64,000 nucleotides of DNA from Macrostomum hystrix. Its lineage: Eukaryota > Animalia > Platyhelminthes. Both the position numbers and the translations under genes were made by a program. Position 1 is the stretch's first letter; each line of letters opens with the position of its first letter. Location of the stretch: assembly GCA_950097015.1 (NCBI GenBank), contig CATNEN010000008.1, forward strand, positions 1,054,001 through 1,118,000, given 5' to 3'. Shown piece by piece: positions 1,521-36,700 of this stretch. The notes below the pieces were generated by a model, which did no database searches, was not told the DNA's origin, and worked only from the letters and a program-made list of their open reading frames with translations.

Positions 1521-2058
1521 TATCCTTAAGTAGCCAGTGGGTATTTGAAATGCAAATAGACTTGGTCAGACGCATAAAATGACAGAAGCGTTTATGTACA
1601 TAACTTAAACTAAAAATTCCTGCATTAAGGCATTGTATTCATGAAATCTACATCAAGAAAATGTATTTATATTTATAAAAATCAATATAATGAATAAAAA
1701 TTCAAATAGAGCTCACAGCAAACAAACAAAAACTGATTTATCAGTTAAAGAATCACAAAAGAGAAAAAATTTTACTGACAATTCATCAGTAAACTAAAAA
1801 AAAACTGCCCCAATTTCAGATTCGATGTCAAGTATACAATGCAGCGATGGACTCATTAATAATATATAAGATCTATGCATTAATGCGCATTAAAAATTAA
1901 TGAAACTAAAAGGTATAGCATAACGATAAGGTAATTTTTTTCTAGAGCTAGCTAATGTTCAAGTTATATAAAAAATCAGGTAATCCAAAAATCTCCATTC
2001 GTTATGACGACTGATGCCAGCAGTTAGTTGGGTAATGTTCAGTTCAGTTAACTTAAAA

Positions 2059-2297
2059 AGGCTCTAGTCCGTTAACTTTATGAGGCTCTAGTCCGTTAAC
2101 TTTATGAGGCTCTAGTCCGTTAACTTTATGAGGCTCTAGTCCGTTAACTTTATGAGGCTCTAGTCCGTTAACTTTATGAGGCTCTAGTCCGTTAACTTTA
2201 TGAGGCTCTAGTCCGTTAAGTTTATGAGGCTCTAGTCCGTTAACTTTATGAGGCTCTAGTCCGTTAAGTTTATGAGGCTCTAGTCCGTTAAGTTTAT
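2059..2297. repeat. 24-bp minisatellite, about 10 copies
   Basis: Unit AGGCTCTAGTCCGTTAACTTTATG. Confidence 0.95.
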
Positions 2298-2693
2298 GGA
2301 AGTTTTTTTTCACAAATTTTCTTGAATGAAATGGATCGAAGTATCATTTTGGTATTTCACACGGACTCGATTAATAAGTCCTAACAAAAAGCAAAAACAA
2401 AAAACTGACTATTAAAAATCTAAAAGCCCTGAGAAAAATAATTAAAAGTAATGCTGTACGCTTGAAATAGAATCATGCAATCAGTCGATGAAACAGAGTA
2501 AAAACAATCCACCAATCAAAAAAGAGGCTTATGTGAGACAGCGAGCCAATAAAGCTAAAAGTACAATGAAAATGGGAAAGATACAGCGATTGAAAAAAGC
2601 AGCTAAGACGGAAACCTAAGTAAATTAAGAGCTAAAAAATGACAAACAAAGCTAAGCTAAAACATGCGTCAAAGCAGCCACGGTGAAGGACAG

Positions 2694-3260
2694 TCAGGGC
2701 GGCAGTTGGATGAAGCCACAGCTGGCGATGCTGTAGGCTGTCAGATCCGGGAACATGGCAGCCGACAGCTGCGGACGGTCAACCTGACGCTTGGACCAGC
2801 GCCATCGACGCCACACGGCCAGGCGGGCCAGTCGACGCAGACTGGCTGGCTGGCTGCTCGCCGCTGCGGCCCTGGCAGCCAGTAGTGCGGCGCATTGGCT
2901 GCCAGGGGGAGCCAGCGCTGCCGGGGTGCTGCCGCCCGGAGTTCGACGCGTCGGATCGGCGCCGAAGGCTAAGAGTACACGGACAACAGTCAGATGGCCG
3001 CGCCTAGCCGCAATGTGCAACGCCGTGCAGCCCAGATGGGTGGCATCGATGTTGGCACCGGCGCGTGCCAGAGCGAAGGCCGCTTCTGATTGGTTGATCT
3101 GAGCCGCCAGTTGGAGCGGCGTCAGGTGCTGAGCGTTGAGACAGCCGGTGCTGTGACCCGATGCCAGCAGGCGCTCCAGCCAGTCCAACTGCCCCTCCGT
3201 CACTGCCGCGTGCAGCGGCGTCAGCGGCGGCGCTGGCGGCGGATGCACTGACTGGGGCGC
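2694..3260 (-). CDS. Ankyrin repeat and SOCS box protein, paralogue B (about 3 ANK + SOCS box); no in-frame ATG at the 5' end
   Basis: Translation has ANK motifs (TPLHAAVTEG, TPLQLAA, TALHIAARRGH..VVRVLLAFGADP) and a SOCS-like tail (PASLRRLARLAVWRR). Begins at acceptor CTTCCAG|GCG (3260, phase 0); stop at 2694. First Met lies near the C-terminus. Confidence 0.8.
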   Translation of the reverse strand, partial: APQSVHPPPAPPLTPLHAAVTEGQLDWLERLLASGHSTGCLNAQHLTPLQLAAQINQSEAAFALARAGANIDATHLGCTALHIAARRGHLTVVRVLLAFGADPTRRTPGGSTPAALAPPGSQCAALLAARAAAASSQPASLRRLARLAVWRRWRWSKRQVDRPQLSAAMFPDLTAYSIASCGFIQLPP

Positions 3261-3324
3261 CTGGAAGCACAGGGTTGTATTTGAGTCTCGGAGATTAGGA
3301 GAAGCATGTTAAGTTGACTCATTT

Positions 3325-3548
3325 AAGACTGAGGGTCAGGTGGGTGTCATTTGAGACTGGGGGTCAGGGTGGGTGTCATTTGAGACTGGGGGTCAGGGTG
3401 GGTGTCATTTGAGACTGGGGGTCAGGGTGGGTGTCATTTGAGACTGGGGGTCAGGGTGGGTGTCATTTGAGACTGGGGGTCAGGGTGGGTGTCATTTGAG
3501 ACTGGGGGTCAGGGTGGGTGTCATTTTGAGACTGGAGGTCAGGGTGGA
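3325..3548. repeat. 29-bp minisatellite, about 7 copies
   Basis: Unit TTTGAGACTGGGGGTCAGGGTGGGTGTCA. Confidence 0.95.
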
Positions 3549-3889
3549 CCAAGTTTTGGTTGATTTAATAGTCTAGAAATGAGTAAAAAGAGTCAAAGAA
3601 TGGAAAAAATAGCACTCTTATCAATAATCTAGAAAATTACTTAGTGATTTATATGAATCTTCATTTACGAGTGTACAACTTTATGATTACGAAGCCTGCA
3701 CTACAGAAGGACAAGAAAATGCTGCAAAAACAAAAAACGGAAAGCTATTAACTAATTTTTTAATAATAATACTAATGAGTAGTAATGCAAGAGGCAATAT
3801 AAGATGCAGGCTTGGTCTAATCTGAAGGTCAGCAAAAATATTGTGCTGAAGACAAACTTTTGTATCATTCTGAACGCTGGCCACAATAT

Positions 3890-4143
3890 TCCTGAATCAC
3901 TTAGTGTTTAGGCACAATGCTTCTGAATCCCTGAATGTTCAGGCACAATGCTTCTGAATCCCTGAATGTTCAGGCACAATGCTTCTGAATCCCTGAATGT
4001 TCAGGCACAATGCTTCTGAATCCCTGAATGTTCAGGCACAATGCTTCTGAATCCCTGAATGTTCAGGCACAATGCTTCTGAATCCCTGAATGTTCAGGCA
4101 CAATGCCCCTGAATCCCTGAATGTTCAGGCAGAATGCTCCTGA
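3890..4143. repeat. 31-bp minisatellite, about 8 copies, abutting the ASB-A stop codon
   Basis: Unit AGGCACAATGCTTCTGAATCCCTGAATGTTC. Confidence 0.95.
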
Positions 4144-4145
4144 AT

Positions 4146-5735
4146 TCAGGGCGGCAGCAGTTCGGGGGGCAGCCAGCAGCAGACGTAGCTCAGAAGGCAT
4201 TTCGGCAGCCGTCTCAGCAGCAATTCATCGGCTACGTCGACAGTAGACAATCGGCGAAGCAGTCGCCAGCGCAGCCAGAGGGCGCGCATCGCCAGCCGTC
4301 GAAGACGGGCCGGAGATTTCGCCGCCTCCTCAGCCGCAGTCAGGAGCCGTTGGCACTCGCTGTCGACCTCAGCGAACTGGCTGGCTCGACGGCCGTCGCG
4401 AGCCTGCAGGCGAGGATTAGCGCCGAAGGCCAGCAGGACGCGAATGACATCCGGGCGGCCCTGCCTGGCGGCCAAGTGCAACGGGGTGGTGTGCCGGCAG
4501 GGCGAGTCCACGTTGGCGCCGGAGCGGGCCAGGACGAAGGCGGCGGCCGGCCGGCCGTGCCAGGCGGCGTAGTGCAACGGAGCGCCAAGGTGGCCGTCGA
4601 ATTTGTCAGGCGCCGCGCCACGATCGAGCAGCAGCTGCCAAGGACGGGGAGCTTTGGATATCACCAACTTCCAACATTTTTCCTTCATTCACCAACTTCT
4701 CTAAATTCTTCCCACATTCTTTCCACATTCACCAACTTCCCACATTCTTTCCCATTCAACAACTTCCCAAATTCTTTCCACATTCACCAACTTCCCAAAT
4801 TCTTTCCACATTCACCAACTTCCCAGATTCTTTCCACATTCACCAACTTCCCGAATTCTTTCCACATTCACCAACTTCCCAGATTCTTTCCACATTCACC
4901 AACTTCCCAAATTCTTTCCACATTCACCAACTTCCCGAATTTTTTCCACATTCACCAACTTCACATATTCTTCACCATTCACCAACTTCCCAATTCTTTC
5001 CACATTCACCAACTTCCCAAATTCTTTCCCCATTCACCAACTTCCCAAATTCTTTCCACATTCACCAACTTCCCGAATTTTTTCCACATTCACCAACTTC
5101 CCGAATTTTTTCCACATTCACCAACTTCACATATTCTTCACCATTCACCAACTTCCCAATTCTTTCCACATTCACCAACTTCCCGAACTCTTCCCACATT
5201 CACCAACTTTCCAAATTTCTCCGTTATTCACCAACTTCCCAACCGATTAGTCGAATCCAGCCCAGGCGTTCTTAAGCCCCAAGATTCATAGTGAAACCTG
5301 CAGTGCAGCAGAGTGACCAGCCGATGCAGCCTCGTGCGCCGGGCCGGACAACGCGAATCTGGGAGCAACCCAGGCGCCGCAGTCCAGCAGCAGCCGCACC
5401 AGATCCGAGCAGCCGCTAGCAGCGGCGTCGCATAATGGCGTGGCGCCGTCGATATTCTCGCGATTGACGCTAGCGCCATTGGCTAGCAGGAATCTGGCGG
5501 CGGCGGCATTGCCAGCCTGGCATGCCAGGTGCAGAGCTGTGTTGCCATCAGCGTCGCAGTCGTCAATGTGAAGATCGCCATCGAGCAACGAGCCACAGGA
5601 GCCGGCAGCGATGGCCCGGTCCAAAAGGAACCCTGCTGTAGACTCGCGGCCGTACAGCGCCGGAACCCCGCCAGCAGCCGCCTCCGCAGTCGAGTTGGAT
5701 TGAGACGGCGTCTGTGCGCCCTGTTCAGACTGTTG
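4146..5735 (-). CDS. Ankyrin repeat and SOCS box protein, paralogue A (ASB13-like); exons 5735-5298 and 4634-4146
   Basis: Exon 1 has ANK repeats (GNTALHLACQAGN, GATPLCDAAASG). Donor CAG|GTTTCA at 5298/5297 and acceptor TTGGCAG|CTG at 4634 give the in-frame join GHSAALQ|LLLDRG. Exon 2 has two more ANK repeats plus a SOCS box (PARLRRLAMRAL...LPKCLLSYV). The 5' end is placed at acceptor TTTCAG|CAA; start codon not found. Confidence 0.85.
4660..5240. repeat. 28-bp minisatellite filling the ASB-A intron
   Basis: Unit TTCACCAACTTCCCAAATTCTTTCCACA with variants. Confidence 0.95.
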
Positions 5736-5778
5736 CTGAAATTCAGAGGCATAGAGAGCAGCTAATTAGCCCTATTAT

Positions 5779-7000
5779 CACCTGAATCTCACCCTAGATT
5801 GGTAGCTTGACACCTGAATCTCACCCTAGATTGGTAGCTTGACACCTGAGTCTCACCCTAGATTGGTAGCTTGACACCTGAATCTCACCCTAGATGGGTA
5901 GCTTGACACCTGAGTCTCACCCTAGATTGGTAGCTTGACACCTGAATCTCACCCTAGATGGGTAGCTTGACACCTGAATCTCACCCTAGATTGGTAGCTT
6001 GACACCTGAGTCTCACCCTAGATTGGTAGCTTGACACCTGAATCTCACCCTAAATGGGTAGCTTGACACCTGAGTCTCACCCTAGATTGGTAGCTTGATA
6101 CCTGAATCTCACCCTAGATTGGTAGTTTGAGACCTGAATCTCACCCTAGATTAGTAGCTTGACACCTGAGTCTCACCCTAGATTGGTAGCTTGACACCTG
6201 AATCTCACCCTAGATGGGTAGCTTGACACCTGAGTCTCACCCTAGATTGGTAGCTTGACACCTGAGTCTCACCCTAGATTGGTAGCTTGACACCTGAGTC
6301 TCACCCTAGATTGGTAGCTTGACACCTGAATCTCACCCTAGATGGGTAGCTTGACACCTGAGTCTCACCCTAGATTGGTAGCTTGATACCTGAATCTCAC
6401 CCTAGATTGGTAGTTTGAGACCTGAATCTCACCCTAGATTAGTAGCTTGACACCTGAGTCTCACCCTAGATTGGTAGCTTGACACCTGAGTCTCACCCTA
6501 GATTGGTAGCTTGACACCTGAGTCTCACCCTAGATTGGTAGCTTGACACCTGAATCTCACCCTAGATTGGTAGCTTGATACTGAATCTCACCCTAGATTG
6601 GTAGTTTGACACCTGAGTCTCACCCTAGATTAGTAGCTTGACACCTGAGTCTCACCCTAGATTGGTAGCTTGACACCTGAGTCTCACCCTAGATTGGTAG
6701 CTTGACACCTGAGTCTCACCCTAGATTGGTAGCTTGACACCTGAATCTCACCCTAGATTGGTAGCTTGATACTGAATCTCACCCTAGATTGGTAGTTTGA
6801 CACCTGAGTCTCACCCTAGATTAGTAGCTTGACACCTGAGTCTCACCCTAGATTGGTAGCTTGACACCTGAGTCTCACCCTAGATTGGTAGCTTGACACC
6901 TGAGTCTCACCCTAGATTGGTAGCTTGACACCTGAATCTCACCCTAGATTGGTAGCTTGATACTGAATCTCACCCTAGATTGGTAGTTTGAGACCTGAAT
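5779..7000. repeat. 32-bp minisatellite, about 38 copies
   Basis: Unit CACCTGA[A/G]TCTCACCCTAGATTGGTAGCTTGA. Confidence 0.97.
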
Positions 7001-7479
7001 CTGAATCTGGCATGATATCTTAAACAACGAAAGAAGAATATGCTAAATTATAAAAACACTAACGTTATATATTGATACAAAATAGCTGCGGGTTTCATAG
7101 AAACAAGGGGACTTCTTAATGATTTTACTTGTTGCTGATTGTCAAAAATATAATGAAGAGTACATCTTCTGTTAAAGTAATAGCAATAGGTTAAAAAAAC
7201 TTGTTTGGCACAAAAGTTAACAAGTTTTACATTTACAGTAAATAGAGTGTTAGGTATGCATTCAACTATTTTTCACAGTCAAATACAATTAAGTTACAAT
7301 CAGTTTCATTGTTTACAAATCAAGTTTTCTTTGTCAAAGTTAATAACGTCAAAGCAGTAACGACAGGAGCAAGTAAACTGATGTATTGCATTGACAAATA
7401 CCTCGGCATCTAATTAGAAATCATTTTTGGAAAACAACTCAGATTGCAGTACTTTTATCACCATCAAACTCACCTGTGT

Positions 7480-7930
7480 AATTTATCCCACTTCCATCTT
7501 ACTCCCACTGTCCCACTACCATCTTACTCCCACTGTCCCACTCCCATCTTACTCACACTGTCCCACTACCATCTTACTCTCACTGTCCCACTACCATCTT
7601 ACTCTCACTGTCCCACTCCCATCTTACTCCCACTGTCCCACTCCCATCTTACTCCCACTGTCCCACTCCCATCTTACTCCCACTGTCCCACTCCCATCTT
7701 ACTCCCACTGTCCCACTCCCATCTTACTCCAACTGTCCCACTCCCATCATACTCCCACTGTCCCACTACCATCTTACTCCCACTATCCCACTCCCATCTT
7801 ACTCCCACTGTCCCACTCCCATCTTACTCCCACTGTCCCACTCCCATCTTACTCCCACTGTCCCACTACTATCTTACTCCCACTGTCCCACTACCATCTT
7901 ACTCCCACTGTCCCACTACCATCTTACCCC
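7480..7930. repeat. 25-bp minisatellite, about 18 copies
   Basis: Unit CATCTTACTCCCACTGTCCCACT[A/C]C. Confidence 0.95.
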
Positions 7931-8218
7931 GATTATCCCGTCAAATGAATTATCAAACCATTATTTCTATATAATATTTGCATCATATTGTTAGATATTT
8001 TAATTCCAAGGTGCTTCAGTACCAATACATTTCTTGGCTGAAACATACATTTTAAGCAAATAACACAAAAGTGATAGCTTTTTAGTGCAAAATTCAACCA
8101 TACTGTATATATATGTGTGTGTGTGGGAAATAAAAGCATTGGATACAATAAGTAAAACTGAGTCTAAAAGCTATCAAATTATGTTTAAAACAGGCGTGCC
8201 ATTTTTGTTGATTCTTCA

Positions 8219-8754
8219 CTGAACTTCAGGTTAGAGTTGAGTACCCTGTCTGAACTTCAGGTTAGAGTTGAGTACCCTGTCTGAACTTCAGGTTAGAGTT
8301 GTGTACCCTGTCTGAACTTCAGGTTAGAGTTGTGTACCCTGTCTGAACTTCAGGTTAGAGTTGAGTACCCTGTCTGAACTTCAGGTTAGAGTTGAGTACC
8401 CTGTCTGAACTTCAGGTTAGAGTTGTGTACCCTGTCTGAACTTCAGGTTAGAGTTGAGTACCCTGTCTGAACTTCAGGTTAGAGTTGAGTACCCTGTTTG
8501 AACTTCAGGTTAGAGTTGAGTACCCAGTCTGAACTTCAGGTTAGAGTTGTGTACCCTGTCTGAACTTCAGGTTAGAGTTGTGTACCCTGTCTGAACTTCA
8601 GGTTAGAGTTGAGTACCCTGTCTGAACTTCAGGTTAGAGTTGAGTACCCAGTCTGAACTTCAGGTTAGAGCTGTGTACCCTGTCTGAACTTCAGGTTAGA
8701 GTTGAGTACCCAGTCTGAACTTCAGGTTAGAGTTGAGTACCCTGTCCGAACTTC
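8219..8754. repeat. 31-bp minisatellite, about 17 copies
   Basis: Unit TGAACTTCAGGTTAGAGTTG[A/T]GTACCCTGTC. Confidence 0.95.
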
Positions 8755-8865
8755 TAAAAGAAGACTAAAAGAAGATAATTCTAAAGAAAAGGCAAAAAAA
8801 TGCGTCATTAATTAAAGCAAACGGACTTTATAAAAACGCGTAGCATCAATTGAAGACTGGAATAT

Positions 8866-11800
8866 TCAAAGCAGACGAACCCGGCAGCTGGGAGTGGAAC
8901 AGTAGCACAGCAGCTCCTTGCCAGGCACGCTGCCAACCTCGTAGCTATAGTCCCAGCACAGCTCTTCGCCAGCCGAGATCCTTCGCAGCGCGAAGAAGGC
9001 GGTCTCCGGGAAGCGAGGATCGTGAGTGCGCACAAAAACACTCTGAACCCGGCAGTTGGGCTCGCACGAATGATTCATGTAGCGGCCAAGATTGCCGCGC
9101 TGTTTGGCGTCCATCACGTAGGGATGCGACTCGCCGAACCAGCTGGCCCGCAGATCCACCGGCTGCGCAACTGCGCTGGGATTCGAGCGACTCTGCATTT
9201 TGTTTTTTAAAATGGCTTTTATCATAAGCTGGCTTAGCAACTCGATATTCTAAGCTTATTTTAATGTTGCTATCAATATCATAGTTGTTAACTACACACC
9301 ACCCTTGATAATAGTTATTCGTCATTAAAGGCTACTCTTCATCGATGTTGGTCACTCTGGCTCAACTCACTCTTCATCGATGTTGGTCACTCTGGCTCAA
9401 CTCACTCTTCATCGATGTTGGTCACTCTGGCTCAACTCACTCTTCATCGATGTTGGTCACTCTGGCTCAACTCACTCTTCATCGATGTTGGTCACTCTGG
9501 TTCACTCACTCTTCATCGATGTTGGTCACTCTGGCTCAACTCACTCTTCATCGATGTTGGTCACTCTGGCTCAACTCACTCTTCATCGATGTTGGTCACT
9601 CTGGTTCACTCACTCTTCATCGATGTTGGTCACTCTGGCTCAACTCACTCTTCATCGATGTTGGTCACTCTGGCTCAACTCACTCTTCATCGATGTTGGT
9701 CACTCTGGCTCAACTCACTCTTCATCGATGTTGGTCACTCTGGTTCACTCACTCTTCATCGATGTTGGTCACTCTGGCTCAACTCACTCTTCATCGATGT
9801 TGGTCACTCTGGCTCAACTCACTCTTCATCGATGTTGGTCACTCTGGCTCACTCACTCTTCATCGATGTTGGTCACTCTGGCTCAACTCACTCTTCATCG
9901 ATGTTGGTCACTCTGGTTCACTCACTCTTCATCGATGTTGGTCACTCTGGCTCAACTCACTCTTCATCGATGTTGGTCACTCTGGCTCAACTCACTCTTC
10001 ATCGATGTTGGTCACTCTGGCTCAACTCACTCTTCATCGATGTTGGTCACTCTGGCTCAACTCACTCTTCATCGATGTTGGTCACTCTGGCTCAACTCAC
10101 TCTTCATCGATGTTGGTCACTCTGGCTCACTCACTCTTCATCGATGTTGGTCACTCTGGCTCACTCACTCTTCATCGATGTTGGTCACTCTGGCTCACTC
10201 ACTCTTCATCGATGTTGGTCACTCTGGCTCAACTCACTCTTCATCGATGTTGGTCACTCTGGCTCAACTCACTCTTCATCGATGTTGGTCACTCTGGTTC
10301 ACTCACTCTTCATCGATGTTGGTCACTCTGGCTCAACTCACTCTTCATCGATGTTGGTCACTCTGGCTCACTCACTCTTCATCGATGTTGGTCACTCTGG
10401 CTCAACTCACTCTTCATCGATGTTGGTCACTCTGGCTCAACTCACTCTTCATCGATGTTGGTCACTCTGGCTCAACTCACTCTTCATCGATGTTGGTCAC
10501 TCTGGCTCAACTCACTCTTCATCGATGTTGGTCACTCTGGCTCAACTCACTCTTCATCGATGTTGGTCACTCTGGCTCACTCACTCTTCATCGATGTTGG
10601 TCACTCTGGCTCAACTCACTCTTCATCGATGTTGGTCACTCTGGCTCAACTCACTCTTCATCGATGTTGGTCACTCTGGCTCAACTCACTCTTCATCGAT
10701 GTTGGTCACTCTGGCTCAACTCACTCTTCATCGATGTTGGTCACTCTGGTTCACTCACTCTTCATCGATGTTGGTCACTCTGGCTCAACTCACTCTTCAT
10801 CGATGTTGGTCACTCTGGCTCAACTCACTCTTCATCGATGTTGGTCACTCTGGCTCAACTCACTCTTCATCGATGTTGGTCACTCTGGCTCAACTCACTC
10901 TTCATCGATGTTGGTCACTCTGGCTCACTCACTCTTCATCGATGTTGGTCACTCTGGCTCACTCACTCTTCATCGATGTTGGTCACTCTGGCTCACTCAC
11001 TCTTCATCGATGTTGGTCACTCTGGCTCACTCACTCTTCATCGATGTTGGTCACTGTGATTCACTATTCATCAACTTTGGTCACTCTGATTCACTATCCA
11101 TCAATGTTAGTCAAAACGATTTAATTTTTATCCATCTCGGTCACTCTGATTCACTCTTCCTCTATGCTTGTCACTCTGGTTCACTCTTCGTCAATGTTGG
11201 TCACTATGCGTCCAACAGCGTCAATGGCATTGATGCCAATCACTCTTTTTTATTATTTAAGCCCATAAAAGGCCAAGTACAACAATACCGCACCTGGTCG
11301 TCCTGGTCGGGCTCGCGAGCCATTCTCTCATAGCCCTCTTTCTCCAGCTGCATGATCTCGATGAGGTCCAACTCGGCCTGATATTCGTCCCCCAGCTCGG
11401 TGCCGTAGTGCACTGCGGCCTCCTCATTGTAGACCTCGCCGGCGTAGATGCAAATGAAAGCGCCTTTTGGTATGTCGTGCAGAGTGCGAATGCCCCAGCC
11501 CTTGCGAGCGGTCCTGAACACCTGGACACAATTTTGCAGAGTTTGGGTGCATCAGTTGGGTTGGACGGGCGATACCGGATTCCCAGAATCCTTCAGTTCT
11601 AAAATAGTTTCTGAGAATCCTTCAGTCCCTCAGTCGATACCAAACCCAGTAAGCTTGAGCCCCTTTGCCGATACCTATTCCTAGAATCATGATGCTCTCG
11701 GCCGATACCCATCCTAAATATCCTTCCGTCCCTCGGCCGTTACCAATCCCGAGAATCCTAGAGTCCCTCGGCCGATACTCATCTTGATAATCCTTCTGTC

Positions 11801-14800
11801 CCTCGGCCGATACCCATCCCGAGAATCCTTCAGTCCCTCGGCCGATACCTATCGCGAGAATCCTTCTGTCCCTCGGTCGATATCCATCCCGAGAATCCTT
11901 CAGTCCCTCGGCCGATACCCATCCAGATAATAATTCAGTCCCTCGGTCGATACCAATCCCGAGTATCCATCAGTGTCTCGGTCGATACCATCCGGAGAAT
12001 CCTTCAGTCCCTCGGCCTATACCCATTCCTAGAATAATTTGATGACTCGGTTGATACCTATTATCTGAAATCTTCAGTGCCTAATTAAACAGATTCCTAA
12101 CTTCATCAGTTAGTCGGTTCAACAGATTTAACAGATTACTCGGTCAGTCGATACCGATACCAATTCCCAAGAATTGTTAAGCAATCCCTCACCTGCAGCC
12201 TGTTCCGCAAGCCGTGCTGCACAATTCGGTTGCGACAGGTAGCCACCCGGCAGCGACACTTTGAATTGCATTCGTAGATGCCGCCCAGAGCGCGAGCCAT
12301 ATGCCTGCCGTGCCGATAGGTGACCCGGATGTCCACTTTGCCGGTGATGGCCTGCGAAGATCGAATCGTCAGCTGCTGGCAGGCGCACCTTCGCCTATCC
12401 GAACAGTCGTCCGTGCAATCGCAGCAGACCAAGAAGCCGGGCTCGGATTCGTTTGTGGAAACCCCACTGGTTGGAACCCGCTCAGCAGCGTACTCAATAT
12501 AAGGCAGGCTGGTGTTGTCCAAGCTATTCACCGCGCTGACGGGTACCGACTCCTTGCCGTAGCTGATGTCCTTCAGCTGGTAGATTATCTGCAATTAGTG
12601 ATTCGGGTGGAAACATAATGTTGCATACTTGGCCTCCTGCATACACAACTGACATGGAATTCTACAGACAGCCCATCTTGTGCAAACCCTGAGGACTAAA
12701 TCGTCTTCATCTTTAGAATCGACCACAAACTATCCTGATTCTACCACAAACTATTCTGATTCTACCACAAACTATCCTGAATCTACTACAAACTATCCTG
12801 ATTCTACCACAAACTATCCTGAATCTACTACAAACTATCCTGAATCTACTACACACTATCCTGAATCTACTACAACATATCCTGAATCTACTACACACTA
12901 TCCTGAATCTACTACACACTATCCTGAATCTACTACAACATATCCTGAATCTACTACACACTATCCTGAATCTACTACACACTATCCTGAATCTACTACA
13001 AAATATGTTGAATCTACAACAAACTATCCTGAATCTACCACAAACTATCCTGATTCTACCACAAACTATCCTGAATCTACTACAAACTATCCTGAATCTA
13101 CTACAAACTATCCTGAATCTACTACACACTATCCTGAATCTACTACAACATATCCTGAATCTACAACAAACTATCCTGAATCTACTACACACTATCCTGA
13201 ATCTACTACAAACTATCCGTATTCAATATCCAGACAAGCAAAACACCTGGTCGTAACTGAAAACGCGCACCTTATTAGGCCGGAATTCGTTATTAATCCT
13301 AACCGCAGCGTCAAAGCAGAAGGCAGACACGTGCAGCCGGCATCTGGTCTCGCGCAGGTAGGCGTCCAAATCTGCGTGACTGCGGAGGCTGCGACCGCAC
13401 GGAGCCCGGTATTCCACCAACTCGCGGATGCGACCGCCACAGCCGCCGCTGGCGCCGGAGTCGTCATCTTCGAAGGCCGCCTGTGCCAGCAGGCGCCACC
13501 AGCCCAGTGCCACCGGCGCCTCCAACGGGTTGCGACCTCGAGCTGCTTCGTCATCGAAACAGACAGCATTAACGGCGTTGGGCGGATCCGGGCAGCAGCT
13601 CGGCGAGCAGCGGTGAGGTCGGTAGAGAGACGGCTGCGGTGCGGGCGACGCGGCATCGAACGTGACCACCTGGTAGCCGCGGTAGGCCGCATCGTCGCCG
13701 TCGTCTTCGGCCTCTTCGTCGCGACGACGTCCACGCCGTCCAACGCGACCAGTCGCCGACTCCGACGCCGGATAGTTCGGCATCGACGCCGTTAACGCCG
13801 ATTTGGTCGACGAAGCCAGCCGACTAGCCGATGTCGATTTTCTGGCGTGGCCGACGCGACTCTGCGAGGCGACCACAGCGGCAGAAGCGGACGAAGCCAA
13901 GTGAGACTTTCTGATCACTTGCTGCTGCTGCTGCTTTGGAGGGCCGTAGAGTCTTTCGTATAGTGTCCTGAGCCGAGTGCTGCCGCGATACACCTGAGGG
14001 CAACGAGTTAAGGATATGACTGACTGACTGACTGACTGACTGACTGACTGACTGACTGACTGACTGACTGACTGACTGACTGACTGGCTGACTGACTCAC
14101 CCACTCGCATGAGCCGTCTTTAGCAAAGGTGATTCTGATGAGGGCGCCGTCCACAGCTTCAACTCGCGCGTTGCACCATTCGCCGAGATGTTCGGCCACA
14201 ACAATCTGACCCGGCTGCAGACGCAGCAGATCCCTAGTGGGATAAGCGTCCAGGTAGTCGCGAATAAAGTAGCGATTATCGGGGCCAGCTAGGCGCCAGT
14301 TATTGACGCTCTGAACTAGGACTCGGTGTACAGTGGCCTGCTCCGAGTACTGGCAATAGCCATCGTCGAAGAATATAAGATAGCGGAATTTATTGGATTC
14401 GCCGGGCGACTCAGCTACGATGCCGGCGTAGCGCGGCGATTCGTCGCCTTCGGCCTCGGCGTCTGGACCCTCGTCGGCGTAGTCGGGATCGGCCACTGTC
14501 GACACCACTCTGGTGCCAACCGGGCAGCGCTCCTGTCGGGCAAGGCAGGAGTCACCCAGAGCCAGCTGGACAGCCGAAATGGTGCGCTGCAGCGGCTGCT
14601 GCTGACTGCCAGCGACGGCAGACAGGGCCGACGAGGCCAGGTACCGAACAATGTAGGTGTCGCGCTGAAGCTCCTGAACGACCAAGGCGCGGCACCATTC
14701 GTCCTGTTCGCGCAGGGCTAGCACAGTTTCGCCGGATTGTACTTTGCTGCGAACAATATCAGACAGGTGAAATAATCAAACAGGTGAAATATCAAACAGG

Positions 14801-17800
14801 TGAAATATCAAAAATGTGAAATAGCAAACAGGTAAGAATTTAACGGGTGAAATTATCTAACAGGTGAACGTATCTAACATGTGAAATCACCTAACAAATA
14901 AAATATAAAAAAGGCGAAATTATCGAACAGATTAGGTTCTTTAACAGGTGAAATCGTTGAACAGGTGATTTGGTTGAACAGGGGAAATGGTTGAACAGGT
15001 GAGATAGTTGAACAGGTGAATTGGTTGAGCAGGTGAATTGGTTGAACAGGTGAAATGGTTGAACGGGTGAATGGTTGAACAGGTGAAATGGTTGAACAGA
15101 TAAACCTGTTAAATGAACCTAATGACTCAAAAAGTCTACAGTTTGTAATTTTATTTGACAGCAACACCGCTTAGACTCACTGTGGCCGTTCCAGAAGATT
15201 GGTAGTGCTTAGATTTTTCAAATTTTCAACCGGCACGAGTTTGACCGGCGCTGTTAGTACAACCCGGCGACTAGGACCAACTATGGAGGACAGCGACGGA
15301 ACAGCAGCCGTAGCCGTAGCCGCATCGTGCTCCAACCTGCGAACTTTATTCGCCGGCGCCAGAGAATCCTCAGCCGTAGTTGAAGACTTCGCAGGCGGAG
15401 GCGGCAGGGACGGTGGCGAAGCCGAGCTCGACGGACCCTCAACAATGACAACATCGTCGCGGTCGCACTCATTTTCATCATCGTCGTCTAGAGTTAGTAC
15501 GTCGACAAGGACGCCGTCGCGTTTTTCGACTCTGACCCGGGCGTTGCTAAGCGATCTGGAACTGTTATTGACTACTCCGGGGACATCGATAATCACCACA
15601 TCGTCATTGCTGTCATTGTCGCTTTCATCGCTGTCGCTTAACTCGATCACGTTTATCTTGTTGAGAAGGCTGAAAAAATTATGGCCGTAGATTCAATTAT
15701 GAGAATGTCACAAAAACTTGGGCTAGAAATTTCTAAAAGTACGCAACGCAAACGCAAAACTCACCCAGTCTCTAATTCTTGGAATTTTTTAGTTCTGGTC
15801 ACCAATTCGGAGTCGATCTCTCGAATTGCCTCGGACACTTTGGCACTGCTTTCTGTTTAAAATTTTGTTAAATTGTTGCAAGGGAAAGCGATTGTTTGAA
15901 TTTCATTCAAGTCACATACATCAGCATCAGGTGAAGTTTCGGGATGGTGGAGTTTCGGGTTTGTAAGTTTCGGGTTGGTAAAGTTTCGGGTTGGTAAAGT
16001 TTCGAGTTGGTAAAGTTTCGGGTTGGTAGTTTCGGGTCGGTAAAGTTTCGGGTTGGTAAAGTTTCGGGTTGGTAGTTACGGGTTGGTAAAGTTTCGGGTT
16101 GGTAAAGTTTCGGGTTGGTAGTTTCGGGTTGGTAAAGTTTCGGGTCGTTAAAGTTCGGGTCGTTAAAGTTTCAGGTCAGTGAAGTTTCGGGTCAGTGTGA
16201 AGTTTCGGGTTGGTAAAGTTTTGGGTCGTTAAAGTTTCGGGTCAGTGAAGTTTCGGGTCAGTGAAGTTTCTGGTTGGTAAAGTTTCGGGTCGTTAAAGTT
16301 TCGGGTTGGTAAAGTTTCGGGTCAGTGAAGTTTTGGGTCAGTGAATTTTCGGATTGGTCAAGTTTCGGATTGGTCAAGTTTCGGATTGGTCAAGTTTCGG
16401 ATTGGTCAAGTTTCGGATTGGTCAAGTTTCGGATTGGTCAAGTTTTGGGTGTTCGAGTACTAAGCTAGGGATTAGCTGCTTACCACCAGCAACGCGAAGT
16501 CTTTTAACAACGTCCTGGTAAAATGTACACTTTGACAGCTCCCTATTCAAGCCTTCGTCGACTCGCAAGTAGCCGAATAAAAATTTGTGAACAACCGCAT
16601 CGATTGCTTCTTCGTCTGTTGACTCGGAGGAGCCGCTGGTCTCGGCTGTAAAACATCAAGTTGGTGGTAAATGATTATATCACACTTTCTTCATTGCTAC
16701 TGTGAGTAACAATCGAAGCACTTAAATCTCGAAAAGAATTATGCATAATCTGTAATAACTGTTGCCATTTCCATTAAATTTCAGAAGCTGTAAAAATGCT
16801 ATTTTTCTTCATTCTCACAGACGTCAAAAACACTTAAAATCGAAAACAACAGCAACCTTACTAGAACTTGAGTTTTTTGTTAACACAAGGCTTCGGAATT
16901 CCTAAAACGACACTTAAAAATGTCTCTCTGTCTGCAACAGTAAGGTTTGCCCGAACACATAACTACTGCTGATGAAATATAAACTAGAATTCCAAAAAAA
17001 TGCGTCAAATGCATTATGGACAATTATAACTCACTAAAGGCCTGAATGTTAGTAACATGAATGAGCTGTGGCTTACTAGGGGCATGTAGGTTTGGGAAGC
17101 GGTTTAGCTGAGACTAAGTGAAGCCCCTGAAGGTTTTGGAAGCGGCTGAGATGAGACTAACTGAAGCCCCTGAAGGTTTTGGAAGCGGCTGAGATGAGAC
17201 TAACTGAAGCCCCTGAAGGTTTTGGAAGCGGCTGAGATGAGACTAACTGAAGCCCCTGAAGGTTTTGGAAGCGGCTGAGCTGAGACTAACTGATGCACCT
17301 GAAGGTTTTGGAAGCGGCTGAGATGAGACTAACTGAAGCACCTGAAGGTTTTGGAAGCGGCTGAGCTGAGACTAACTGAAGCCCCTGAAGGTTTTGGAAG
17401 CGGCTGAGATGAGACTAACTGAAGCACCTGAAGGTTTTGGAAGCGGCTGATATGAGACTAACTGAAGCACCTGAAGGTTTTGGAAGCGGCTGAGCTGAGA
17501 CTAACTGAAGCACCTGAAGGTTTTGGAAGCGGCTGAGCTGTGGCTCGGAAGCAGCAGGAAGAAACCACGCCAAATCTGCAACTCACGGAGGTTGGAGGCC
17601 GTGTACTTCCTAGCCAAAGACTGAAGCTCCTCGCGCGGCACTATGGCATAGAAGCGGGTCTCAAAGGCCAGCTGAATGTCAGCCTGCGAGTTCAACGGCA
17701 GCGCTGGCAGCTGCTTTGCGTCACGCGGGCTGCTCTCCAACGGTGATACAGCATCGCGGCAGCACTGAGTGATGGCGCACAGCCATGCGCTCTTGACCTG

Positions 17801-20215: not shown

Positions 20216-21751
20216 ATGTTAAACGGTACCAAAGTGCCGGCGCCTCATGAAATGATAGCAGATACAGTCGCACTAACTGGCCTAGCGATTGTAGGCTTAT
20301 TCGGCAACGCTCTGATTATCATGTGCGTCATCGTTCACAAGAAGCTTAAGAATGTTACGTCGTTATTTGTCGCCAATTTAGCGGTAGCGGACATGCTATT
20401 AGCGGGTCTAGTTGCGCCAGGTTCAATGCGCCTACTGTGGCGCCAGCGAGGCCTGCCTGTGAGCCCGCTGTGCCAGCTATTTGGTGCAGCTTTGTACTTT
20501 AGCTGCGCAGCGGTGGTAAACTTCAGCGCTCTGATTGCGCTAACTCGCTACATTGTTATCTGTAAGCCTCATTATGTTGTCGGCCTATTTAGGCACAAAC
20601 GAGCCGCTAGCTGGTGCGTCGCGTTGTGGTGCTATACTATATTGCAAGTCGTTGTGCCCTCCGCTGCCAAGCTATTTCAGTACGCGTACAATCCAGTAAT
20701 AGAGGTCTGCCATTTGAACTATACAAAGCATCCAGTGGCCATCGCCGTCTACATCAATTGCTTCTGCTTCCTACCATGCCTTGTAGCTTGCATTGTGTGC
20801 TATGTTTTAATATTTTATGCGCTCCGACAGAACAGGAGAAAACTAACTCGGCACATGTCGTCAACTATGAGCGCAAATTTTCTGGCCAAGAAGCTGATTA
20901 GAGAGCGCAGAGCAACCATGCCGCTGTTTGTGTCTCTGTTGTCATTTTTTGTTCACTGGCTTCCAGTTATGATAATGTTTGGTTTAGACTCCAACTTCGA
21001 AAGATACAATCCGAAGCTTCATCGTTACCTCGGTGTGTTCAGCATAGCTAGCGCCTGTGATAATTGGATAATCTACGGCCTGTTAAACAGGAACTTCGCG
21101 AATGGATATCGATTTGTTCTCTCTTATTGCTGTTGCTGCAAATCTAGTAAAAATGGGGATCCAGCACATGAGTTGGTGAAGATGCGTCGCACACCTGGCA
21201 GAGCGGCAGGACACAGTAGACACTCTGGCGAGCGCCTAAACTGTCGACACCTATCGGCGGGTAGTCATCATCATAACAGCTGTCAAATGAAGCAACGATG
21301 CTGCCTAAACAATGCATCTACGGCGGCTGCAATTGCCACAGTAGCGAGCGCGCACGTTGCTCCGATAGTAAGCGAACTGGAAGATTACAGTGACCTGGAG
21401 AGTTGGAACAGCCTTAGTAGGAGGCATCCAGCCCAGCAGCAGCAGCAGACGCAACAGGAAACCTGGATGTTCGCCAACAATCAGCAAGAGTTCGCGAAAG
21501 AGGCTGCAATCAATGAGTACGCATATGACAATGGCGATGAGGATGATGATGACGCAAGCGAAACAGACGAATTCGATCGAATCAATGAGAAATGCTGCGG
21601 TGCAAGGCACAGAGTCGAGGCGATGCAGCAACAGCAGCAGCAGAGGCTGCCAGCCGGTGAACAAGCTCAGACACCGGCGCGACAATCGCTCATTGTTGTC
21701 ATAGCAGCACGAGAAAAGTTTGAAAATGATGGAAAAGTTGCGCGGCTATGA
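20216..21751 (+). CDS. Class A (rhodopsin-like) GPCR, melatonin-receptor-like, intronless, 511 aa
   Basis: Seven hydrophobic segments with GN (TM1), LAVAD (TM2), a TM3 Cys, IALTRYIVIC, W in TM4, HWLP (TM6) and NWIIYGLLNRNF (TM7/H8, similar to melatonin receptor NAIIYGLLNQNF). N-glycosylation sequon NGT; long low-complexity C-tail. Confidence 0.88.
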   Translation: MLNGTKVPAPHEMIADTVALTGLAIVGLFGNALIIMCVIVHKKLKNVTSLFVANLAVADMLLAGLVAPGSMRLLWRQRGLPVSPLCQLFGAALYFSCAAVVNFSALIALTRYIVICKPHYVVGLFRHKRAASWCVALWCYTILQVVVPSAAKLFQYAYNPVIEVCHLNYTKHPVAIAVYINCFCFLPCLVACIVCYVLIFYALRQNRRKLTRHMSSTMSANFLAKKLIRERRATMPLFVSLLSFFVHWLPVMIMFGLDSNFERYNPKLHRYLGVFSIASACDNWIIYGLLNRNFANGYRFVLSYCCCCKSSKNGDPAHELVKMRRTPGRAAGHSRHSGERLNCRHLSAGSHHHNSCQMKQRCCLNNASTAAAIATVASAHVAPIVSELEDYSDLESWNSLSRRHPAQQQQQTQQETWMFANNQQEFAKEAAINEYAYDNGDEDDDDASETDEFDRINEKCCGARHRVEAMQQQQQQRLPAGEQAQTPARQSLIVVIAAREKFENDGKVARL

Positions 21752-30987: not shown

Positions 30988-32698
30988 CTACCTACAAAAT
31001 TCAATTGCAGGTGCTTTCACCGGAATGTTAGCCGGGTCGAACTCTTCGGCGTTAAAAGCGGCAATGTCTGCCTCGGATAGGCTCTCCAACAAACTGTAGT
31101 CCGGGCACACTGACGCGTCTGCAAAGCCGCTGCGACCTGTGCTACCTGACGATGCCGCTGAGCCTCCACTTGATGCGGCTTTGCTAAAAGAAAACGTGGA
31201 CGATGAAGCGCCAGATGTTGAGGCTGTGGTTGCGGAAGCATTGGCGTTGACTTGCTGCTGTTGTGGTCGCATCGGTTGTGATTGATTGCTAGATATCACA
31301 CCAGCAGAGCCTTGAGCTTGCTGTGTCTGGGATGCAGCAAACGGACCACCAGAACTCGGTGCCTCTTGAGGTCGCACGCCCGAGAGCGGACCACCAGAAG
31401 CCGGTGCTTGTTGAGTCTGCGCTCCAGAGAACAGACCACCAGAACTCGTTGTCTGTTTAGTCTGCGCTCCAGAGAACAGACCACCAGTAGCCGGTGCATG
31501 TTGAGTCGGCGCTCCAGAGAACAGACCACCAGAAGCCGTTGCCTGTTGAGTCTGCACTCCAGAGAACAGACCACCAGAAGCCGGTGCCTGTTGAGTCTGC
31601 ACTCCAGAGAACAGACCACCAGAAGCCGGTGCCTGTTGAGTCGGCGCTCCAGAGAACAGACCACCAGAAGCCGGTGCCTGTTGAGTCTGCACTCCAGAGA
31701 ACAGACCACCAGAAGCCGGTGCCTGTTGAGTCGGCGCTCCAGAGAACAGACCACCAGAAGCCGGTGCCTGTTGAGTCGGCGCTCCAGAGAACAGACCACC
31801 AGAAGCCGGTGCCTGTTGAGTCGGCGCTCCAGAGAACAGACCACCAGAAGCCGGTGCCTGTTGAGTCTGCACTCCAGAGAACAGACCACCAGAAGCCGGT
31901 GCCTGTTGAGTCGGCGCTCCAGAGAACAGACCACCAGAAGCCGGTGCCTGTTGAGTCGGCGCTCCAGAGAACAGACCACCAGAAGCCGGTGCCTGTTGAG
32001 TCGGCGCTCCAGAGAACAGACCACCAGAAGCCGGTGCCTGTTGAGTCTGCACTCCAGAGAACAGACCACCAGAAGCCGGTGCCTTTGGAGATTGGGCGCC
32101 GCCGAACAAGCCGCTGCTGGTGCTGCCAGCAGTAGCGAAGGCTGTAGGCGCCTCACCGAACAAGCCGCCGGAGCGCCGGGGTGCGACTAGTCCACCGCCG
32201 GAAGGGCTCACAGTCTGAGCCGAAGTCTGCAAAGCAGCTGGCTGTAGACGTTGATTCTGAGCAACGTACTGCCTCTGTGGAAGGGTTGCGACGGCGTTTA
32301 TGAAGACGAGTTTAGTGCTAATGATTCCTATCAAGAATTCAGATAGGAAGATATATTATGTTAAGCGACGAAAGCAAGAAACTAACCAGAGCTTCCAGCA
32401 CTGCCGCATTTGGCTGTATGATCGCCTGCCGTTTAGCGGCATAGTCCTGTGCTAGGCTGGCCATTTTGGCAAGATGCTCGGCGCTCCAGCCCGACGGTCC
32501 TACTCGGCTCTGGTAAGCGTGCAAACGAAGCTCCTCCGGGCTGTAGTCGGCTAATTCTGGCAGGCTGGGCCAGTGCGGGTTGCCATAGCAACTGAATGGC
32601 CACATTTTGGCGCCCTCCCAGGAGCTCACAAAGTGGATGATGTGACCCACCGGGTCGGATGATTGCGACGGCGGATTCTGAAGTCGCAATCGATTCAT
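30988..32698 (-). CDS. NUP42: Nucleoporin NUP42/NUPL2 (hCG1)-like, about 532 aa; exons 32698-32387 and 32274-30988
   Basis: SWEGAKMWPFSCYG...DYSPEELRL matches the NUPL2 N-terminal block (WESSGQWMFSVY...DISPEELRL). There are GLF[S/G] repeats and a C-terminal LSEADIAAFNAEEFDPANIPVKAP resembling the Gle1-binding motif. Donor CTG|GTTAGT; phase-0 acceptor TTCCACAG|AGG (inferred). Confidence 0.85.
31390..32095 (-). repeat. Coding 45-bp tandem repeat in NUP42 (15-aa unit SGGLFSGAPTQQAPA)
   Basis: Near-identical 45-bp units within the open frame. Confidence 0.92.
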
Positions 32699-33732: not shown

Positions 33733-36700
33733 CTAATGGACGCCGTTAGTAGCCGAGGCTGTCTGCTGCTGCTGCTGCCCAGAATCTCTCCGGCGTTTCT
33801 TTGTTCTCTCAACGCCGCTGTCGCCTGACTCCGAGTCCGAACTAGCCGAATCGTCGCCCGAGCCGCTGCTGCTGCTTGACGAACTGGACGAGCTAGACGA
33901 AGACGAGCTACTAGACGAGCTGTGAAAACCGCTAGGCCGGCTAGTGTCGATGGAGTCAGCCACCGATGCCAGTTCTGGCCGACTCCGCCGCAGTACAGAG
34001 AGCATCTTGCGGGCCATCTTGGGCCGGCCGCGTTTAGTTTTATGCCAGACTACAGGAAAATTGACGCTAGAACAGAAGTTCTGCGTAACTGCGACCGTGT
34101 CGTCTAGATTGAGCACGACGTGCCACCAGCCGCCGGGCACGAAGACGGTTTCGCCTGGTCGTTGAAGAATCTCTAACGGACGATAGCGCTCCGGCCAGTC
34201 GGGCTGTTGAGTGCGGGGATAGACGCAGGTAAACCAGGCGGCGGCTTCGCCTTTCTGCTTAGCGGCCTCAATACCGGGCGGCTTGACCAGATCCTTAGGC
34301 GCGTCAATGGGGAACAGGCACCAGCGTTTGTGCCCGCGAACCAATGCATTCCAGGCGCTGGTGCCTAGGGGATCGATGTGAATTCCGGTGCCGCTGCGGG
34401 CTGGGCCCATTACGAACCAACGATAGGGCGGCCGCCTATGCTCGCCAGCAAGGCTAAATAGATCCTCTGGAAACAGGTGGCTCACCTGGTCGGGGGGCAT
34501 TGGATTTCCCTGAGTTGCTTCGATATTACAATAGAGATAGATATGACGCATAATCTGGTTGGGCCAAATGTACAGCCAGTGTTACACATCTAAATGCTTC
34601 TCCGTACAGCAGCTGTTTAGTCCATGGACTGGGGGCCCTTCTATATTCTCCTTCTATAGATAAAACTTCTAGCATGGTCTAGTTTAGTTTTTTTGCAAGC
34701 AACAGTTGCTTAGAAACTAAATATCAAACTAAATATTGCCTACCAATTTTTTAAAACAACTAATTCACAGTGGACTGGGGGGGGCTAGTACATCTCAGTG
34801 GACTGGGGGGGGGGCTAGTACATCTCAGTGGACTGTGGAGTCTAGTACACGGTTCTCAGTGGACTGTGGAGTCTAGTACACGGTCCTCAGTGGACTAAGG
34901 AGTCTAGTACACTGTCCTCAGTGGACTGTGGAGTCTAGTACACGGTTCTCAGTGGACTGTGGAGTCTAGTACACGGTCCTCAGTGGACTAAGGAGTCTAG
35001 TACACTGTCCTCAGTGGACTGGGGAGTCTAGTACACGGTCCTCAGTGGACTGTGGAGTCTAGTACACGGTTCTCAGTGGACTGGGGAGGCTAGTACACGG
35101 TTCTCAGTGGACTGTGGAGTCTAGTACACGGTCCTCAGTGGGCTGGGGAGTCTAGTACACGGTCCTCAGTGGACTGGGGAGTCTAGTACACGGTCCTCAG
35201 TGGACTGGGGAGGCTAGTACACGGTCCTCAGTGGACTGGGGAGTCTAGTACACTGTCCTCAGTGGACTGGGGAGTCTAGTACACGGTCCTCAGTGGACTG
35301 GGGAGTCTAGTACACGGTCCTCAGTGGACTGGGGAGTCTAGTACACGGTCCTCAGTGGACTGGGGAGTCAAATTTCAAACCCAGACCTTTCTGTTAGGAC
35401 CAGCCTTTTATCTAATATACAGTCACTGAAATTAAAACTCGAACAACTAGGAGTTAGTCTGCTATAATTAGCGTACATCACGGCTTCACCAATAACTCAC
35501 CCTGTAGTCCTCAAGCAGTCGACGCTTTTTGCGGTGCTCGCCAAAGTTTCCATCGAAGATGTACAGCGGACTATCGTCGCTATTGGCGCGCATATACTGG
35601 GTGAAGTATTTCATCTTGATTCGCACAGAATAGCCCTCATCGTCTTCGCCGCATTTAAACCGCTGGTTGCGATACTTTTTTGTTAGACGAGGAACCGTCC
35701 ATTTGCGCCAGGCCTGCGTTTTTTAAGTATTATCATGATTTCAGTCTGTGAATGGGAGCACGTCTGGCAGAAATGCCTGGCAGAACTGAAAACTGCCAGA
35801 TGTCGGATTAGCTGCCACAGGCCAGCCAAAAAGTGCCAGCTGACAACTGCCATCCGCCAACTGCAAGGCTACAACTGCCAGCTGACAACTGCCAGCTGAC
35901 AACTACCAGCCTACAACTGCTATACGCCAACTACCAGCCTACAACTGCCATACGCCAACTACCAGCCTACAACTGCCATACGCCAACTACCAGCCTACAA
36001 CTGCCATATGCCAACTACCAGCCTACAACTGCTATACGCCAACTACCAGCCTACAACTGCTATACGCCAACTACCAGCCTACAACTGCCATACGCCAACT
36101 ACCAGCCTACAAATGCCATACGCCAACTGCCAGCCTACAACTGCCATACGCCAACTGCCAGCCTACAACTGCCATACGCCAACTACCAGCCTACAACTGC
36201 TATACGCCAACTACCAGCCTACAACTGCCATACGCCAACTACCAGCCTACAACTGCCATATGCCAACTACCAGCCTACAACTGCTATACGCCAACTACCA
36301 GCCTACAACTGCCATACGCCAACTACCAGCCTACAACTGCCATATGCCAACTGCCAGCCTACAACTGCTATACGCCAACTACCAGCCTATAACTGCCATA
36401 TGCCAACTACCAGCCTACAACTGCCATACGCCAACTACCAGCCTACAACTGCCATACGCCAACTACCAGCCTACAACTGCCAGCCTACAACTGCCATACG
36501 CCAACTGCCAGCCTACAACTGCCATACGCCAACTGCCAGCCTACAACTGCCATACGCCAACTACCAGCCTACAACTGCCATACGCCAACCATATGGAATC
36601 TATATGCAAATATTTGATTCCCATATTTCACTGTGTTTATATTCACAAGGTGTTTAAGTGTTTAAGCGCACGAGTACGAGGGTAGGACCTGATTAAGACA

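Follow-up and report, generated by a model that had tools for sequence, protein, structure and literature searches.

Two ankyrin-repeat genes of Macrostomum hystrix whose initiator methionine is very probably donated by the spliced leader

We analysed a stretch of 64,000 nucleotides (nt) from Macrostomum hystrix (contig CATNEN010000008.1, forward-strand positions 1,054,001 to 1,118,000; the whole stretch is called the window, and positions are counted from its first letter). On its minus strand lie two neighbouring genes, here called A and B, which encode ankyrin repeats and which have no ATG at the head of their open reading frames (ORFs). RNA-derived contigs show that the pre-mRNAs of both genes are trans-spliced, and we consider it very probable that the AUG at the 3' end of the spliced leader, which arrives in phase 0, is the initiator methionine of both ankyrin ORFs. 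The leader is joined to the pre-mRNAs at 5736 and 3261, leading to messages that begin ...UUGCAUG/CAACAG... (gene A) and ...UUGCAUG/GCGCCC... (gene B). Ribosomes scanning from the cap would then reach the leader AUG first and initiate there. The predicted products would have about 309 residues for gene A, with the expected N-terminus (M)QQSEQGAQTPSQ..., and about 189 residues for gene B, with the expected N-terminus (M)APQSVHPPPAPP.... As neither ORF has a start codon without trans-splicing, the production of either protein would depend on the leader.

The coding sequence of gene A is divided between two exons. The first, exon 1 (5298..5735, 438 nt), provides 146 codons without a methionine, starts in phase 0 with QQSEQGAQ... 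and encodes ankyrin repeats. It is followed by a phase-0 GT..AG intron (4635..5297), inside which lies a 28-bp minisatellite at 4708-5242, and by exon 2, whose coding part (4146..4634) comprises 162 codons and a TGA and encodes further ankyrin repeats and then a SOCS-box-like tail. The frame starts straight after the AG of the trans-splice acceptor TTTCAG (5736..5741; TTTCAG/CAACAG, with the G at 5736), and the terminal AUG of the leader is placed directly before base 5735. According to a script, the sole in-frame methionine is codon 116 of exon 2, that is, codon 262 of the 308 genome-coded codons. An in-frame TAA (5768..5766) is located 11 codons (33 nt) 5' of the acceptor, and no ATG lies in between. 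Six ATGs occur in exon 1, all of them out of frame; five terminate within 32 codons, and the sixth (5479), which was followed only to the junction, stays open for 60 codons to the end of the exon. For these searches and scripts the two exons were treated separately and not as a joined protein.

Gene B is organized in a single coding exon (2694..3260) of 188 codons (3260..2697) and a TGA, containing three to four ankyrin repeats followed by a SOCS-box-like tail. Here as well the frame opens in phase 0, with APQSVHPP..., straight after the AG of the acceptor TTCCAG (3261..3266; TTCCAG/GCGCCC, with the G at 3261). The first in-frame methionine found by the script is codon 169 of 188, and an in-frame TAA stands 17 codons (51 nt) 5' of the acceptor, again with no ATG in between. 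Within the first 600 nt of the mRNA body there are five ATGs, all with frames of 38 codons or fewer. The initial annotation had claimed that both ORFs lack a methionine before their C-terminal regions and begin in phase 0 directly after a YAG acceptor, and that gene A has an in-frame TAA about 30 nt upstream; all of this agrees with the positions given above, and gene B has an in-frame stop of its own upstream as well.

The coding units of both genes are GC-rich (65-69% GC, GC3 67-78%) and are flanked by AT-rich sequence in which minisatellites with a period of 24-35 bp abound. This composition leads to an expectation of approximately 2.3 methionines in gene A and 2.6 in gene B. Because only two to three are predicted for each ORF, the low methionine count is only mildly unusual, and it is the absent start codon that matters.

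Public sequencing runs were used to look for the junctions. Six runs from two studies contain the stretch, and four of them were compared, as assembled contigs, with positions 2500-5790 of the window; X3 and X4 belong to one study and X1 (organism A) to the second. Although no library type is given for the runs, the presence of both a spliced joint and leader junctions shows that they contain RNA-derived sequence. The spliced joint, 4634/5298 in X3, skips 663 letters that are bounded by CT..AC on the plus strand, corresponding to GT..AG on the coding strand, and confirms the intron of gene A. On the 3' side of this gene, contigs cover 4077-4634 (X3, X4), 3723-3900 (X4) and 3676-3950 (X1). The 3' untranslated region (UTR; 3676..4145) accordingly extends to at least 4077 and possibly to about 3676, passing through the 31-bp minisatellite at 3892-4145. 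This array begins immediately after the stop codon, and the 3' UTR enters it directly.

At the 5' end of gene A, contigs end at 5736 in X1, X3 (record 13) and X4 (record 21), and thus in two studies; records 13 and 21 begin within exon 1 and match it with 100% identity. At gene B, contigs end at 3261 in X3 (record 8) and X4 (record 14). The latter spans 2500-3261 (762 nt) with 100% identity to the window and carries 88 extra letters past 2500, which places the 3' UTR of gene B at 2412..2693, its end being approximate. Past 5736 the contigs of X3 and X4 continue with 21 letters, and past 3261 with 23 letters, for which the window has no counterpart, and the same holds for the overhang of X1 at 5736; in X3 and X4 the reverse complements are CGAAGACTCAATTTATTGCAT for gene A and TGCGAAGACTCAATTTATTGCAT for gene B. 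The base after the loose letters is a G, which is common to the end of the leader and to the acceptor AG. Over 397-762 nt the leader-bearing contigs are 100% identical to the window, and exon depth is accounted for in full by contigs that bear the leader.

The loose letters correspond to a known leader. The published spliced leader of Macrostomum lignano is CGGTCTCTTACTGCGAAGACTCAATTTATTGCATG (PMC8629364), and its 3' end, which terminates in ATG, is identical in M. lignano, M. cliftonense and M. hystrix (PMC8629364; PMC10468722 supplement). Together with the shared G the loose letters make up the 3'-terminal 24 nt of the published Macrostomum leader and end in ...TTTATTGCAT + G. Since they represent the leader's 3' end, the mature mRNAs of both genes carry an in-frame AUG, reading ...TTGCATG/CAA CAG TCT GAA CAG (M-Q-Q-S-E-Q) in gene A and ...TTGCATG/GCG CCC CAG TCA GTG (M-A-P-Q-S-V) in gene B. 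Both acceptors also match [T/C]TNCAG, the top-ranking motif of Macrostomum trans-splice acceptors (PMC8629364). The initial annotation expected a leader that terminates in AUG and is spliced in frame at 5735 and 3260, and contigs of X1, X3 and X4 for gene A and of X3 and X4 for gene B bear this out. A leader gene was searched for in the window itself, where no copy with three or fewer mismatches occurs and Rfam gives no matches.

The contigs of run X1 deviate in several respects. On gene A a single contig bears the leader CGAAGACTCTCTTTTTTGCAT(G), which has three differences from the published Macrostomum leader and keeps the terminal AUG; the variant leader strings are CGAAGACTCTCTTTTTTGCATG and CTCTCTTTTTTGCATG. 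A literature search for the variant sequence returned no paper containing it. It may represent a second variant of the spliced-leader RNA (SL-RNA), or it may come from a strain or species closely related to this one. Compared to the window, X1 further has A>G at 2988, a difference shared by X3, another A>G at 5595, T>A at 3723 and, at 3710, a deletion of 10 nt. At approximately 0.4%, these differences resemble variation between alleles, strains or homeologues.

One could argue that the leader-bearing forms are by-products, and that function lies with minor cis-spliced isoforms in which an upstream exon brings its own ATG, for example from beyond the minisatellite at 5779-7002 or via an AG near 5761. 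Flatworm acceptors often serve both cis- and trans-splicing (PMC12582326), and contigs lose rare variants: assembled contigs give no isoform proportions, and minor cis-spliced forms could escape in them. The contigs of all four runs nevertheless hold no joint to any upstream cis exon, and RNA depth is zero in each of these runs at 5737-5790, the 54 nt 5' of the gene A acceptor. The full exon depth is carried by leader-joined contigs, and an in-frame TAA stands 33 nt 5' of the gene A acceptor. The same pattern is found independently at gene B, where depth is zero across 3270-3379, just 5' of the acceptor. We therefore regard cis-spliced functional isoforms as very improbable. The minisatellite in question (5779..7002, no strand assigned; 32 bp, 38 copies according to Tandem Repeats Finder) begins 43 nt 5' of the acceptor and probably belongs to the outron of gene A or to its upstream region.

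For the step from junction to translation, initiation at the leader AUG is the most likely course, as inferred from the scanning model and from flatworm precedent. In each message no AUG precedes that of the leader, and 5' of the C-terminal tail no other AUG is in frame with the ankyrin ORF, which makes it the most likely initiator. Every reported flatworm leader has ATG at its 3' end (PMC12582326). In Schistosoma mansoni the leader AUG is in frame in 28% of trans-spliced transcripts, and more than 40 cDNAs depend on it for their start (Cheng et al. 2006, pmid 16230357, as cited in PMC9851317). Several points weigh against leader-donated initiation in genes A and B. The base at position -3 of the leader AUG is a U, a weak Kozak context; the RNA support consists of assembled contigs and not of raw reads; the junction of gene B is supported by one study only; and a word-index protein search with gene B as query gave no orthologue that could show conservation of the N-terminus.

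The weak Kozak context might also be taken to favor a start elsewhere, with the transcripts being trans-spliced but initiated at a near-cognate codon, for which, for example, GTG at codon 5 of gene B and ACG at codon 9 of gene A are available in frame, or else being untranslated relics. The leader AUG, however, comes first and lies in frame. The two ORFs are also long and rich in GC3, the ankyrin domains they encode are well formed, and another flatworm has been shown to initiate at a leader AUG (Cheng et al. 2006, known to us via citing papers). Both ORFs have stayed open at an identity of only 44% to each other, and they are therefore probably translated. We give little credence to near-cognate initiation or to relics, and hold to the leader AUG as the start.

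Each of the three exons encodes ankyrin repeats, recognized as Pfam Ank and Ank_2 with E from 1e-13 to 5e-19. For gene B an AlphaFold2 model built with an ankyrin alignment reached a mean pLDDT (predicted local distance difference test) of 86.9; the single-sequence model was uninformative (pLDDT 38). In the alignment-based model the first ankyrin repeat starts from residue 13, 12 codons past the acceptor, and the tail is predicted to form helices at 122-136, 139-160 and 163-169. The model matches DARPins (designed ankyrin repeat proteins) and ankyrins with Z of about 21 (Foldseek, VIA-align), and these matches cover residues 9-135, i.e. the ankyrin part only.

The tails read ..PARLRRLAMRAL..RRLPKCLLSYV.. 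in gene A and ..PASLRRLARLAV..MFPDLTAYSI.. in gene B. By eye they resemble SOCS boxes, with motifs similar to the BC-box and Cul5-box consensus; in gene B the second of these is displaced by one residue. The profile tests fail: Pfam SOCS_box (PF07525) matches neither the whole exons at E<=0.1 nor the tails alone at E<=10, and phmmer of both tails against the sequences of the PDB returned no match. Among language-model neighbours of gene B, the 30 nearest named ESM Atlas clusters shown are ASB9-, ASB7- or ASB8-type or SOCS-box families (0.97-0.98). The best cluster for the tail of gene A alone is SOCS_box as well, but its value of only 0.75 makes it no more than a lead. A word-index search of a 5.8-billion-protein collection with gene B as query found neither protein, and thus no self-match, nor a close relative; its best five matches are generic ankyrin proteins with 39-44% identity, restricted to the ankyrin part. 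The label "ASB" of the initial annotation is thus partly supported: the ankyrin repeats are solid, and the SOCS box is detected by Pfam in neither exons nor tails. With the tail supported by motifs and language-model similarity, we word the assignment as ASB-like only: the two products are ankyrin-repeat proteins whose tail resembles a SOCS box, and they are not confirmed members of the ASB family.

Gene B aligns colinearly with exon 2 of gene A, with 44% identity over 115 amino acids, and the alignment reaches the start of the C-terminal tail. This colinearity identifies the two genes as paralogues, with gene B as the shorter copy. A tblastn search within the window found no other copy of either gene and no relic of gene A exon 1 5' of gene B. 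The paralogy, together with the common strand and the phase 0 of both boundaries, would also suit a reading in which 3260..2694 serves gene A as an alternative last exon, reached from the donor at 5298. What is joined at 3261 in X3 and X4 is, however, the leader and not exon 1 of gene A, and the contigs of the four runs contain no 5298-to-3260 joint. An alternative last exon is consequently extremely improbable, and we treat gene B as a trans-spliced gene in its own right. The initial annotation had named three outcomes that would speak against a leader-donated start, namely a cis-spliced upstream exon with an ATG, a joint of 5298 to 3260 and a leader without a terminal AUG; they were looked for and none was seen.

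The arrangement of the two genes raises the question of an operon. In M. lignano, trans-spliced neighbours with a repeat-adjusted gap below 1 kb are counted as operonic (PMC8629364). Genes A and B share a strand, are both trans-spliced, and are separated by 884 nt between the stop of gene A and the acceptor of gene B, or 401 nt if two minisatellites are subtracted, in agreement with this published rule. RNA fragments occur in the gap at 3497-3610 (X3), 3723-3900 (X4) and 3676-3950 (X1), and none of them bridges it. The operon is a candidate only. One could go further: genes A and B might form a two-gene paralogue operon resolved by the leader, in which gene B might have arisen by partial duplication and be translatable only via the leader AUG; separately, the variant in X1 might be a second, undescribed class of Macrostomum SL-RNA. 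We put these ideas forward as speculation and think them rather doubtful. On the operon reading, the leader AUG, which any phase-0 acceptor receives, would allow gene copies truncated at the N-terminus to survive.

The surroundings of both genes are unusually dense in minisatellites across 2047-11055, with a period of 24-35 bp and 88-98% identity. Arrays are found at 2047-2298, 3319-3547, 3892-4145, 4708-5242, 5779-7002, 7486-7927, 8219-8754 and 9334-11055, and they yield long spurious ORFs, e.g. 4134..5291 and 9345..11333 on the plus strand. Further along the window follow a SETDB1-like gene with Tudor_4, Tudor_5 and MBD pieces (12136-15690, minus strand) and genes for a rhodopsin-family G-protein-coupled receptor (20216-21751), an FG-nucleoporin (30988-32334), a JmjC-domain protein (33733-34551) and a TGF-beta-family ligand (46027-46860).

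In vertebrates, ASB proteins such as ASB9, ASB7 and ASB8 act as the substrate receptors in ubiquitin ligases of the Cul5-Elongin B/C type. Judging by their predicted sequences, the products of genes A and B would share with them the N-terminal ankyrin repeats followed by a short helical tail with L-x3-A-x3-[LV] and LPxxLxxY[VL]-like motifs. They differ in that their tails stay below any Pfam SOCS_box score and that the Cul5-box-like motif of gene B is one residue off register. The output of both putative ubiquitin-ligase adaptors would depend entirely on trans-splicing.

A start codon donated by the leader has been established in flatworms since 2006 (Cheng et al. 2006, in the parts reported by later papers). 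As the mechanism is already established, the value of genes A and B lies in confirmation and annotation and not in discovery. Gene models of Macrostomum and of flatworms in general cannot demand a genomic ATG, and pipelines that do so will truncate or drop such genes.

The closest counterpart is found in the leader-AUG mRNAs of S. mansoni (Cheng, Cohen, Ndegwa and Davis 2006; via PMC9851317, PMC12582326 and PMC5832876), in which, as in genes A and B, a leader ending in AUG is joined in frame onto an ORF without a start and supplies the first methionine. As far as these citing papers report it, the differences are that S. mansoni is a parasite and M. hystrix a free-living macrostomorphan, that initiation was experimentally tested in the former and is predicted here, and that the recipients described by us are tandem paralogues. 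Trans-splicing and operons in Macrostomum were described by Ustyantsev and Berezikov (2021, PMC8629364) and Wiberg et al. (2023, PMC10468722), and the leader's 3' end as well as the acceptor motif are the same at genes A and B. According to these papers approximately 20-30% of Macrostomum genes are trans-spliced, and the ATG of the leader was already noted as a likely start codon. In the portions covered, they neither list genes A and B nor count genes that depend on the leader AUG. A related case is provided by the spliced-leader ORFs (slORFs) of nematodes, Oikopleura and trypanosomes (PMC9851317), where the start codon likewise comes from the leader and not from the gene. These are mostly alternative ORFs opened by a near-cognate NUG, whereas in genes A and B a true AUG opens the only substantial ORF found.

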